Source of the DNA: Felis catus
Taxonomy: Eukaryota
DNA: 64,000 bases
Direction: 5' to 3'
NCBI RefSeq assembly: GCF_018350175.1
Contig: NC_058381.1
Coordinates: forward strand, 60,512,001-60,576,000
Of this stretch, positions 25,750 through 31,200 are shown piece by piece (the first letter of the stretch is position 1; each line of letters opens with the position of its first letter). Under the pieces are notes generated by a model. The model did no database searches and had not been told where the DNA came from. It worked only from the letters and a program-made list of their open reading frames with translations. A program made the translations under genes and the position numbers.

Positions 25750-27666
25750 TCACGGTTCTCCTCCTGGCAGTCGCCTGTCAGTTCTGTGGGTGTCCTGGAG
25801 CCAGCGCAGCACCTCCGATAAGCCAGTGCCCTTCTGGGCGCTGATTTCGGCCGTGGTGATGTTCTGCTTGGCACAGGCAATGATGTCTGGGAGCCTGATC
25901 AATGACTTCATCTCGTCTACGGTCATGTAACAGGGCAGATCGCTAGGGCAAAAGAAGCGCCCCGTCACGGCGGGCTGCCACAAGTGCATCCCAAACCCCA
26001 CGGTACCCCCCCACCCCCCAAGCCACGAGCCACCGTCCCGGCTCCACCCCAAGGGAGCTCCTCCCAGGACTCGCGGCCGTGCTCTCCTCCACGAAGACAG
26101 ACCGTACATCTTATTGAAGAGAATCAAGACGGATGCTTCTGCGAGTTGTTCTGCAGAAAGGAGGCCCAGGAGTTGCACACAGGACGCGGACAGCTGAGTG
26201 GGGTTAGCGGCGTCCATCATGAACTGGGGAGGAAGAAAACAGAGATGGGACCACCCCGTGATGGAGACAGTCCTTCCCAAATCCCCTCCCTGGGGCAGCA
26301 AGACCTGGCTCAGGAAGAACAAAAGGACTTTTAAACAAAGGATTTGGGGGGACAGCAGAAGTTAGGGGAAATGACTTTCATGAGAGCGACCTGATATCAT
26401 TTGCTTTCACCTACGTGGAAGTCCCTCTACTCACGTGGTCATCAGTTCTTCCAGGAAGGGTCCTGGAATCTGGGGCACAGGCCTTGCCAGGATGGGACAG
26501 ACCCAAGAGATGTGGGATTCAAACACAAACATAAAAACACACCCAGAGGATCAAGGCAGAGAGCAAGCGCCAGTTACTGGCAGAGAATAAACGCTCCCCT
26601 CAGCAAACCTTGCGTGAGCTTTTATGTCCGCTCTGAAGCAGAAGCATTTAGGGATCAAGCTATTCGGAAAAGGAAGCAACTCGAAGTTCGGTCATGTTTC
26701 CTTGCCTTCGCGTAATTGCTCAGGAACCCAAACTTCAGCCTATGCAGAGTGAGGTCCAGCACCAGACAACGCTTAAGTGCAAAGGATTACGACCTACCAG
26801 GAGAGAGTGGCAATTTCCAAAGTAGCTGGACCAGATGGGGCCCATGCACCCCCCCAGCTCCCGGATGGTAATCTTTCTCTGGACGACGATGTCAGTAAGG
26901 TTGGTGCCCACCTGTGGAAAAACTCGAGCTGCACAAAGGACACAAGCACTTTCCCATTGGGAACTCCTGGCTAGCAGCTCTCTACACTGTGATCCAAACC
27001 CCAAAACGTCCCTTGTCAAGGGCTTAGCCCCTAAAACACAGTCCTACGTAAGGAAGACTAAACTGGGTTCCAACGCCCTAACCCTCAGAGCGGACTGTGG
27101 CCGCAGCACCCACACCCATCGGGGGATTCGCCCTCCGAGGCGACCAGAAAAAGCAGTCTCAAGAGTGGTGAGGGGTGGGCGGCTCTGGGCCTCTGTCCCG
27201 CACCCACTTCCCCTGCAGCTGTGTCCCCAGGAGGCAGTCTCCTTCCCAAGACACCCCTCACCTCCTGAGGGTTGGGTCTAACACAGGGACCGGCCGGACT
27301 CCAGCATCCGCTTAGAACAGCCCAAAGCACTTTGCAAACCGCGAAGGGTACCCCCTTCTCGTAGCCCCGCGAGAGGGCGGGTGCCTACCGTGGGGCGCGT
27401 CGGAGGAGCATCGCCCAGGTCGCCCTTCCCATTCCCGGAGCTCAGCTGTGCGCGCGGTCAAGGATCCCCAGAGCCAGGCAGGGAAGGCGGGCGGCAGCCG
27501 GACCCCGCCCGGGGAAACCCCCCCGTCCCGGCGCCCCCAGCCCCGCCCCCCCCTGGGAGCACCCCACCCCCCACTCCCGGGCCCTCGCCCGACGCGGAAG
27601 GATAGTCTGCAGCCTTTTCACCAACAGCGTTTTCCCGACACCCGAGGCTCCCAGGAGAAGACACAT
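25750..27666 (-). CDS. ARL16: ADP-ribosylation factor-like GTPase 16, 180 aa; exons 27666-27606, 27447-27389, 26911-26798, 26223-26108, 25942-25750
   Basis: Contains the P-loop GASGVGKT, RELGG (G3-like) and ILFNKID (G4). 61+59+114+116+193 = 543 nt in frame. Intron 1 is U12-type with CT-AC ends; the others are GT-AG. Confidence 0.93.
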
Positions 27667-28270
27667 CGCGTCCCCCGACTCCACCCGGCACCCGTAGCCC
27701 GCGCAAGTCCCGCCCTCCACCCCGCTTTCATTGGCTAGGCCTCACGTCCAAGTTCTTCATTGGTTCGCGGCGCTCACGACCTGGTGCAGCCCAATCGGCG
27801 CACAGCCTCTGGGGCGAGCCGAAAAGGCCGCCTCCTCGCCGCTCGCGGCCCGGCCGGCGCCGCGCGCGTGCGCGCGCCCGGGGAAAAGGCGGAAGCGGAA
27901 GTCGGGGGCGCGCCGGTTCGCAGCGGGGAGCGCAGCGGCGTCGGGTCGGGGTCCTGGGGCGCCATGGGGCGCGGCAGCGGCACCTTCGAGCGTCTCCTAG
28001 GTAACGTGTCCCCAGCCCCCCGCGGCTCGGCCCGCGTCCTGGGAGCTGAGCCGGGAGGCGGCCGCCGAGCCCCCGGGGTGGGTGGGCGCGCCCGCGCTTT
28101 GGGGACCGGGCAGTCCCGGGTGCTGGGCGCGGGCTCCGACTCGAGTAGGTGAGGGTCCGCGGGGGAGACCGGGCCCGCGCCCGCGGCGACTGCGCTCGGG
28201 GCTCTGCTCCTGGGCCGGGAGCGGGCCGGTCCCGGGGAAACAAGCATCTGACTGAGCGGGCCACAAGTCC
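27330..28270. promoter_or_regulatory. Bidirectional CpG-island promoter ARL16/HGS: three CCAAT boxes about 30 bp apart (27730, 27759, 27791) and tandem ETS site CGGAAGCGGAAGT (27890-27902)
   Basis: The ATGs are about 300 bp apart, head to head; motifs read directly. Confidence 0.85.
27448..27605 (-). other. ARL16: U12-type (minor spliceosome) intron of ARL16, 158 nt, CT...AC termini
   Basis: 5' end CTATCCTTCC, branch site TCCTTGAC with the A 10 nt from the 3' end, no polypyrimidine tract. Removing it gives an in-frame alignment to the recalled orthologue. Confidence 0.85.
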
Positions 28271-31200
28271 TGAGTCACGGAAACGGGTGACCTGGTCACA
28301 TAGACCCGCTCCCCCAAAAAACCTAGGTTGCATGGGGTTTGAGGCTGCCCCAAACATTGGGCTCCAAAGGGTGGAACCAGTAGTGTCTTCACTGGGACCT
28401 GCCACGCTCTTATGAGCGCTGCTTCCCTGGGGAACCAGGCCGGCGCTGTCTGTCCCCACTGGGCTCCCGGAAGGCCGCGGTGGTTTAGGAAGGCGGGTTT
28501 TCTGTTTGCCGGAGGTGGAGCTGATCCTTTGGGAGCCTCCTGGAGGTCACGAGTTTTAGCAAAGAAAATGAATGTTTAGGGACGTGTCCTCTTCTGCCCC
28601 CAGTGAGACTGCGTTGCGTGGGCTCTGTTTGGGGCCAGTGCTCCCTGTGCTCCGGTGGTCAGTCTGAGCCTGTCACGCTTTCCCCTTGAATACGGTTTTG
28701 GAGAAGACCTCAGATGAGGCACCTTCCTTGTTCTGAGCACACGCAGCTGAGCAGTGGCTCAGCCCCCCAGAGATCAACCCCGAAGTTACTGCCAGACCAG
28801 TACTGCGAGTGGGTGCACCTTGTTAGATCACCTGTGTGTCCCCGGGAGGAGAGCCAGCAGGGCTGGAGGACAGAGCATGTGTGTCTGCCTGAGGCAACTG
28901 TGATGTGGAGAGTGTGGAGGTATCATTCGGAGAGTACTTCTTCCGGGTCAGTCCTGTCCTCATCCCACGAAACACTTGGCATCTTCTCCAGCCTCGCCCT
29001 TGCTGGGATCTCATCAACTAGGCTAAACTTGGGGGAGAACCAGGGACTCTGCGGGATGAGGTGGCCGAGTGTAGTGTTGAACTCTGCCTGGCTCTGCCCC
29101 AGCGAGCCGTGTGACCTCACTTCTCGGCTTCCTTGTTTTTGTCGGTAAAGAGGATGGAAACAGGACCTTGCTGGCGAGGCTGTGTGAGAATTCAGCATTT
29201 GCATAAAGCCTTTGAAACGGCATTTGGTCCACAAGTGCATAACCGGTGTTCCGTATCGTTATTTTTTAAGCGGTTTGTCCTTTCTCTGAGGACAGTGCTG
29301 TCATCATCAGGTGGCAAGAGGATTTTCATGTGCCTTTCCATTCAGTCCAAATGTTTTAAATGGGAAGGAGACGGTCTCTCCTCCCTGTTGCGGAGCTCTG
29401 GGGCCACCTAGGGCATCAGACGAATGCCGAGCCCCAGTAATGATGCGTTTTTGCTTTAGACAAAGCTACCAGCCAGCTTCTGCTGGAGACCGACTGGGAA
29501 TCCATCCTCCAGATCTGTGACCTCATCCGCCAGGGGGACACACAGTAAGTGAGGCGGGCCTGTGCCGCCCAGAAGCGAGGGGGCGGCACCATGGCGCGCT
29601 CGGGGTTGCTTGGTGCCCTCTGATGCGCCAAGATCCGTGCCCTCATGGGAGCAGGTCCCGAGGTGGAGAAGTAAATGGTCTCCACACTGGGAGTTTTGGG
29701 ATCTGGGGACAACGAAAGGGCTTTCTCTGTATGGTCTGGAGGCGTGTGATTCCCTTACCGTTTGCTTGGGGGTTTTGAGGACCAGAGGGCGGGTGGGCTC
29801 TCTTCACGTTAGCTTCTGAGGTGGTTCGTTTTTCTATTTGTTTTACCAACGTCCTTTTCTTTCAGAGCAAAATACGCAGTGAGTTCTATCAAAAAGAAAG
29901 TCAACGACAAGAATCCCCACGTGGCCTTGTATGCCCTCGAGGTAACTAGCACTGCCCCCCCCCCCCAACCCCGCGCTCTGGCCACCTCAAGAGTCCCCAC
30001 CCCGGTGTCCGTGTCAGGAAGGCAGAGACGAGTTGAGTCTGGGGCCTTGCCCACCTGCCTGGGGAACGAGGGAGATACGAGCAACCTGATAGAGGTCATG
30101 CCTCCGCTCTCCCACCTGCAGCCGGCTGACTTAGGGCCCAGAGATGGACTCTAGTCTCTGTCCCTGGTAGTAAAAAATGGAATCAGAAGGGGCGCACGTA
30201 GCAGCGGTTGCTGCCCGACCCAGAACTGCCACGTGGATCCCTCGACAGGCTGGTTTGCCCGAGGGGCCTGTCCAAGAGGGGCGTCCCACCCTGACCGGTG
30301 ACTTGGCCCGTCCCTTCCTCGGGTCCCGCAGGTCATGGAGTCTGTGGTGAAGAACTGTGGCCAGACGGTCCACGATGAGGTGGCCAACAAGCAGACTATG
30401 GAGGAGCTGAAGGAGCTGTTGAAGGTGGGCTCTTGGAAGGGACAGACGGTTCTAGACTGTGGGGAGTGCAGTGGCCCCGAGGCCGGGCTCTTCTGGGTCT
30501 TTGCCGGCACTTGGGGCAGAGCAGTGCCGGGCGGAGCAGAGGACAGGAAGGTGAGCACCTCAGCCTCAGGAATCCCAGCTGGGTGAGGTCGGGGTGTCAC
30601 CAGAAGTGAGCCAGGCTGCTGCGTCTGGGGACACAGAGGAGACCCTGCCGTTCCTAGGGGAAAGGCTTCCCAGGGGCTGGGCTCAGAGCCTCACTGGGTG
30701 GTGGGGAAGGAGCTGTGTGTGCGTGAGTAGCTGTGGGCAGGGTGTGCGGGTGGAGGCCTGCGGGGAGCCCCGAAGCGTGGGCGGGGGGGGGGGCTGTCCC
30801 ACGCGCAGAGCCAGGATTCTGAGCAGGGAGGCACGTGAGTCTGACGTGTTCGTGGAGGGAGAGCTGGGGGAGACGGCATACCGGGGACACCTTGGGGAGT
30901 GGGTTTCACACTCTCTGTTCTTAGGGGAGGGACGGTCCTCCAGAGTCCCTAGAGAGAGTGTCCTGCACAGGCCACCGCCCAGCTGCAGGGATTGTGATGT
31001 GGGTGGTGACAACATGAGGTTGGGTGATACAGAGCAGGTGGTGCGGCCATTCTTTGAGGTGAAAGGGCATTTCGCAGGGGTGAGGCCACCTGGGGGCGGC
31101 CAAGGAGCCCAGCCCCATATACCGGCTCTGTCACCACTGGTGGGCGGGGCCGCCGCTTCCCGGCCCGGGTGGGCACCCGTGGGCTCACGTGGCCAAGAGC

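Follow-up and report, generated by a model that had tools for sequence, protein, structure and literature searches.

ARL16 and HGS at the locus

The window, by which we mean the whole 64-kb stretch of DNA analyzed here, carries ARL16 on the minus strand and HGS on the plus strand, arranged head-to-head, their ATGs 298 bp apart (27667-27964). ARL16 is a cilia gene and is required for ciliary traffic, while the product of its neighbor on the opposite strand has VHS, FYVE and Hrs_helical domains. The interval between the genes is a CpG island of 70-74% G+C, and three CCAAT/ATTGG boxes are found between the ATGs, at approximately 27731, 27759 and 27791. An Rfam scan of positions 27000-28300 detected no RNA family, and so no intron-hosted snoRNA or miRNA. 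The coding features of this region are as follows.

27965..28000, plus strand: coding start of HGS exon 1, MGRGSGTFERLL, then a GT donor; ATG at 27965
27606..27666, minus strand: coding part of ARL16 exon 1, 61 nt, ATG at 27666-27664; encodes MCLLLGASGVGKTLLVKRLQ and the first base of the next codon
27448..27605, minus strand: ARL16 intron 1, 158 nt, phase 1, CT-AC termini, U12-type, 80% G+C
27389..27447, minus strand: ARL16 exon 2, 59 nt, encoding (K)LSSGNGKGDLGDAPPTRPT; opens AG CTG AGC, in frame
27388, minus strand: GT donor of ARL16 intron 2, an ordinary GT-AG intron
26798..26911, minus strand: ARL16 exon 3, VGTNLTDIVV...NCHSLL

The identity of the gene is supported by 265 ARL16 proteins matched by the read-through translation of window exons 4-5, and the Leopardus ARL16 protein (P0005:1-78) matches the window exon by exon. 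On the minus strand exon 1 ends in CTG CAG A at 27606, and joining exons 1 and 2 gives MCLLLGASGVGKTLLVKRLQ-K-LSSGNGKGDLGDAPPTRPT (...VKRLQ-K-...). The same junction is present in the NCBI ARL16 models of three felids (P0003, P0005 and P0006), which read ...VKRLQKLSSGDGKGDLGDAPPTRPT... at this point. When the window's own genome was searched in six frames for a processed ARL16 retrocopy, which would preserve a fossil copy of the spliced junction, the sole match was the gene itself, exon by exon.

Several features of ARL16 outside intron 1 were also noted. The felid C-terminus (window positions ~25750-25775, minus strand; P0003, P0005 and P0006) ends in ...THRTDRRLPGGEP and gives a protein of 180 aa. 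This exceeds the 173-aa protein of most mammals by seven residues, indicating that the usual stop was lost in Felidae. Intron 4 (25943-26107, minus strand) is open in the ARL16 frame, within a 203-aa frame 1 ORF, and a felid-like Logan contig that is 97% identical (P0001) encodes the form that reads through it. The bear and stoat models use an alternative donor at intron 4 that adds six nucleotides (NKTYGDLP and NKMYGDLP versus NKTDLP and NKIDLP). Another Logan contig (P0127, 1087 nt) contains an ARL16-like ORF with exons 1-3 joined, many substitutions (LLVKWHQKLSSQYEKGDLGNPPPTWSMVGTNL) and an intron-3-like read-through, and may represent a transcribed pseudogene or a divergent ARL16 copy.

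U12-type motifs at the boundaries of ARL16 intron 1

Three sequence elements define the ends of the intron.

27597..27605, minus strand: 5' splice site CTATCCTTC; +2 to +9 match the U12 consensus and +1 is C
27457..27464, minus strand: U12 branch-point sequence TCCTTGAC; presumed branch A at 27458, 10 nt from the intron 3' end
27448..27449, minus strand: 3' terminal AC of intron 1; invariant in all 12 orthologues

The first 10 nt of the intron (27605-27596) read CTATCCTTCC. The branch-point sequence begins 133 nt beyond this block and is followed by 9 nt (CGCGCGCAC) to the intron end. The intron thus carries most of the features by which U12 introns are recognized: TATCCTT at +2 to +8, a branch-point sequence that fits TCCTTRAC, and a distance from branch to 3' end in the expected range of ~10-15 nt with no polypyrimidine tract, the last 30 nt being only 20% T. 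Where it departs from the class is in its terminal dinucleotides, which are neither AT-AC nor GT-AG; the 3' AC is canonical and the +1 position is C. Terminal dinucleotides are regarded in the literature as non-defining for the U12 class (PMC2831892). In addition, the intron is orthologous to an established U12 intron that has AT-AC termini and full motifs in other vertebrates (see below). Full U12 motifs, CT-AC termini and canonical AT-AC orthologues are what characterize the CT-AC subtype of U12 introns, and all are found here.

The sequence TATCCTTY occurs once in the 64-kb window compared with 0.95 expected, and TCCTTRAC-N5-12-AC once compared with 1.19 expected; chance alone would account for either U12 motif in a sequence of this length. 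Yet both of these lone matches are on one strand, in the correct order and exactly where the ARL16 reading frame breaks off and resumes. By our own arithmetic, assuming equal base frequencies, the chance of both motifs falling at fixed boundaries is approximately 1e-9.

No GT, GC or AT donor is found at the exon 1/intron 1 junction. The sole nearby GT (TTG|GTGAAA) is 16 nt upstream of the junction and its use would remove conserved residues. Every coordinate and letter that an earlier preliminary description of this DNA had given for the intron was correct, and its statements that the intron has no polypyrimidine tract and that the junction offers no GT donor were both borne out.

Transcript evidence for CT-AC splicing

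Direct support for removal of the intron as a CT-AC unit is provided by a bat mRNA contig (L007; Logan, run SRR25884826), which encodes the full ARL16 protein. When this contig was mapped on the bat genome (L006), intron 1 was excised exactly as CTATCC...CGCAC, with no alternative placement. Introns 2-4 in the same alignment are GT-AG and lie on the same strand as the CT-AC intron. The spliced LQKLSS junction was also present in transcript-derived proteins from pangolin-like (P0018), bovid-like (P0036) and bat (P0055) sources, encoded by contigs of 1.2-3.1 kb. At the level of annotation, NCBI models that use the CT-AC junction are available for three felids, bear, mink, pangolin, goat and bat.

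Not all transcripts are spliced at this position. Two Logan transcript contigs of 1.05-1.14 kb, one pangolin-like (P0023) and one bovid-like (P0147), have ORFs that run straight through intron 1, suggesting that splicing efficiency may be low. In the window, retention of the intron leads to a stop codon shortly after the start of exon 2 (frame 1 ORF, 27699-27445). A search with P0005:1-78 found no felid transcript-derived N-terminal ARL16 fragments, and the NCBI models of felids may be based in part on protein homology instead of RNA evidence. By analogy with the bat, precise CT|AC splicing very probably also takes place in the species of the window.

Orthologous introns and the origin of the C at +1

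To place the intron in an evolutionary context we extracted ARL16 intron 1 from the genomic loci of twelve orthologues. The loci compared with the window are listed by their termini.

CT-AC (Leopardus, Hyaena, Ursus, Manis, Capra, Hipposideros): CAGA (CTGA in Ursus) followed by CTATCCTTC; intron of 156-259 nt
AT-AC (Papio, Mus pahari, Elephas, Choloepus): intron opens ATATCCTTC; 86-120 nt
AT-AC (chum salmon): intron opens ATATCCTTT, branch site CCCTTAAC, ends AC; ~380 nt by motif positions

The comparison divides the loci cleanly, with CT-AC termini in all seven Laurasiatherians and AT-AC termini in the five outgroups. The Leopardus intron is identical to that of the window at both ends, and throughout the CT-AC group, window included, the 3' part consists of CCTTGAC, 8-9 nt and AC|AG. 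The baboon, mouse, elephant and sloth introns agree with this group in position, phase, branch site and terminal AC, and the salmon intron interrupts the same codon as in mammals, again in the same phase. In the orthologues the branch A is 10-11 nt from the 3' end, and among the 11 mammals both +2 to +9 of the 5' splice site and CCTTGAC are invariant.

AT-AC termini extend from teleosts to placental mammals, indicating that A at +1 is ancestral. The distribution of the C then indicates that it is a single derived A-to-C substitution, common to Feliformia, Caniformia, Pholidota, Ruminantia and Chiroptera. By parsimony, in a sample without Eulipotyphla and Perissodactyla, the change would date to the Laurasiatherian stem or near it, and at least to the Scrotifera stem. 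Since the C is common to several orders, it is neither felid-specific nor an assembly error. The preliminary description had proposed a functional U12 intron with C at +1, or an AT-AC intron with a lineage-specific A-to-C change, and had suggested aligning the orthologous introns. That alignment, together with the bat mRNA contig, supports a functional U12 intron that derives from an AT-AC form; the lineage concerned is not the felids, as the change is shared by five Laurasiatherian groups.

The pattern of conservation within the intron is also informative. Among the six Laurasiatherians compared, whose lineages have evolved separately since the A-to-C change, 100% of columns are invariant at +1 to +9 of the 5' splice site and 89% at the branch site, versus 14% in the intron interior (pairwise identity 0.32-0.67) and 60-67% in the coding 15-mers that flank the intron. 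Retention of the U12 motifs beyond the level of the flanking codons, while the interior diverged, indicates that selection for U12 splicing persisted after the A-to-C change.

The CT-AC and AT-AC forms differ in G-run content as well, with 11-19 G-runs in the Laurasiatherian CT-AC introns versus 4-7 in the mammalian AT-AC versions; the window intron has 13 runs of at least three G. These G-runs might act as intronic enhancers that compensate for the C at +1. The longer, G-richer CT-AC introns trace to a single evolutionary event and so do not allow a statistical test.

Alternative explanations for the CT-AC junction

An error of assembly or base calling at 27605 would leave an ordinary AT-AC intron, and a single base in a hard-to-sequence region of 80% G+C is all that separates the window from the canonical state. 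The same C, however, recurs in six further assemblies, which are independent and represent four orders, one of them from a second felid whose 5' region is identical, and this effectively refutes an error; we assign it practically no weight. All sampled 31-mers of 26800-28000 are likewise present in many DNA runs (at least seven studies and a second organism), with the proviso that a sampled word may not cover 27605. It is only marginally easier to read the interval as a U2-type GT-AG intron of an antisense transcript directed towards HGS. The plus strand does read GT...AG and the region is a bidirectional CpG-island promoter, but the donor (GCT|GTGCGC) and the acceptor, which follows the purine-rich GGAAGGATAG, are both poor U2 signals, and the plus-strand intron would begin within ARL16, over 360 nt before the HGS ATG is reached. 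The plus strand of this interval would read GT...AT in five other species, and the U12 motifs on the minus strand are invariant. In the bat contig, intron 1 is spliced out together with three GT-AG introns in the ARL16 sense orientation, and the ARL16 ORF is preserved. We have rejected the antisense reading as very improbable, since the intron is assigned to the ARL16 strand by its U12 motifs, by the coding frame, by its AT-AC orthologues and by the sense mRNA contig alike.

The remaining alternatives accept the C and the strand and concern what the C does to splicing. The change could have disabled the U12 site in felids, leaving the intron mostly retained or removed through a cryptic U2-type pair, TTG|GTGAAA with the AG 2 nt past the AC. 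This pair (the GT 16 nt upstream together with CACAG|CTG) would give an in-frame product without VKRLQK, and the Hyaena model does take the downstream AG. Retained-intron contigs from other Laurasiatherians, and the stop that retention meets just inside exon 2 of the window, are also compatible with a disabled site. On the other hand, VKRLQK is missing from none of the ARL16 proteins retrieved, the bat splices the same CT-AC intron precisely, and unused U12 motifs would not have stayed invariant for this long. The Hyaena model, for its part, is out of frame across exon 2 and can recover only by way of a second shifted site, as is typical of an annotation artefact. On these grounds the cryptic pair was rejected, and loss of the U12 site as a whole appears improbable. 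A milder version, which refines the main reading rather than opposing it, is that the intron is correctly spliced but slow, a detained intron that makes Laurasiatherian ARL16 output unusually sensitive to minor-spliceosome activity. The two retaining contigs are consistent with this, as is the content of RNA-labelled runs, which hold ~75% of whole-gene words, above the exon-only share, several of these runs being only guessed to be RNA. Minor introns are, however, often retained regardless of their termini. Reduced efficiency of a CU-AC intron relative to wild type, with correct splicing, is described in the mutational study as quoted in PMC2831892. We consider detention unlikely on balance.

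A probable U12-dependent intron with C at +1

We therefore favor, with considerable confidence, the explanation that ARL16 intron 1 is an ancient U12-dependent intron of the AT-AC class in which the +1 A became C in an early Laurasiatherian ancestor, and that it is still excised precisely before the C and after the AC. Following this change of the first nucleotide, the unchanged TATCCTTC element at +2 to +9 would be bound by U11 and then by U6atac, and the branch site TCCTTGAC would pair with U12 at 10 nt upstream of the terminal AC. Cleavage exactly before the C and after the AC would join ...CAGA to AGCTG... and keep the frame of the ARL16 GTPase (LQ-K-LSS). Motifs and orthology point to the minor spliceosome as the machinery responsible. 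That the C may cost some efficiency and yet be tolerated is suggested by analogy with the mutational study, in the form in which PMC2831892 cites it. Human ARL16 is treated as a minor-intron gene and is spliced abnormally when the U11/U12 protein ZCRB1 is lost (PMC13216214).

A stronger version of this explanation can be put forward tentatively, as somewhat more doubtful than probable: that no other natural CT-AC minor intron is as widely shared or as long-lived as ARL16 intron 1, the A-to-C change having become fixed a single time, on the stem of Laurasiatheria, and been held under selection in every descendant order, with lengthening and G-run enrichment of the intron as possible compensation for a weakened 5' end. 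If true, the intron would offer a natural system for the study of cleavage-site choice without a purine at +1. The ARL16 case shows that a U12 5' splice site can keep a pyrimidine at +1 throughout an entire mammalian superorder, and it supports the view that the minor spliceosome defines the 5' site by +2 to +9 rather than by the terminal base.

Opposite-strand reading and annotation of ARL16

According to Larue et al., who filter for them, CT-AC introns are usually wrong-strand GT-AG artefacts (PMC10639083); the aligner STAR has a separate motif code for CT-AC (PMC13149111). ARL16 intron 1 reads GT...AG on the opposite strand, as the preliminary description pointed out and as follows from its termini by construction, so that strand assignment by motif, and filters which discard CT-AC junctions, can mishandle the gene. 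The mis-annotation that was foreseen has one visible case. The Hyaena hyaena ARL16 model (P0009; L002:1501-1830, GCA_003009895.1) reads LQ-TELRGWEGRPGRCSPDAAHVFPQ-VGTNL and is frameshifted through exon 2, where TELRGWEGRPGRCSPDAAHVFPQ replaces KLSSGDGKGDLGDAPPTRPT. Its sequence fits use of an AG located 2 nt beyond the true AC, followed by a shifted exon 3 acceptor that restores the frame. The CT-AC intron probably misled the annotation here, which would make the frameshift an artefact. The hazard extends to the genomes of cat, dog, cattle, pig, bat and other Laurasiatherians.

Comparison with known CT-AC introns

Natural CT-AC introns of the U12 type have been described before. Lin et al. 2010 reported them in Trappc9 of mouse and rat, the orthologous introns of other species being canonical (PMC2831892), and Larue et al. 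2023 count 24 CT-AC introns among ~73,700 conserved minor introns of animals but do not name the genes (PMC10639083, Table S1). We found no paper in the searchable literature that links ARL16 with CT-AC. The caution in the preliminary description that novelty would drop if such an intron was already catalogued is nonetheless apt, as RefSeq models already use the junction and CT-AC U12 introns are published.

With respect to the ancestral form, the CT-AC intron and the AT-AC version of primates, rodents, elephant, sloth and salmon share the same gene, position, phase and TATCCTTC element. Both have CCTTGAC (CCTTAAC in salmon) 10-11 nt from the terminal AC, and neither has a pyrimidine tract. 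They differ in the +1 base, which is A in the AT-AC version and C in the window, and in length, with 156-259 nt in Laurasiatherians versus 86-120 nt.

The closest engineered counterpart is the CU-AC mutant of Dietrich, Fuller and Padgett 2005, which, as quoted in PMC2831892, gave the correct product with reduced efficiency. The mutant and the ARL16 intron both have C at +1 and C at the last position, and according to the same quotation the mutant was correctly spliced via the U12 pathway; the mutant, however, was an artificial reporter with reduced efficiency. The Trappc9 and ARL16 introns are both natural U12 CT-AC introns with canonical orthologues, and both are explained by tolerance of C at +1. 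Reports of the Trappc9 case are confined to two murid rodents, whereas the ARL16 change is present in at least four mammalian orders. Overall, the ARL16 intron is a member of a rare but known subtype of U12 intron and calls for no new mechanism; at most, this particular case had yet to be described by name, and the only fresh element in it is its spread across at least four orders.
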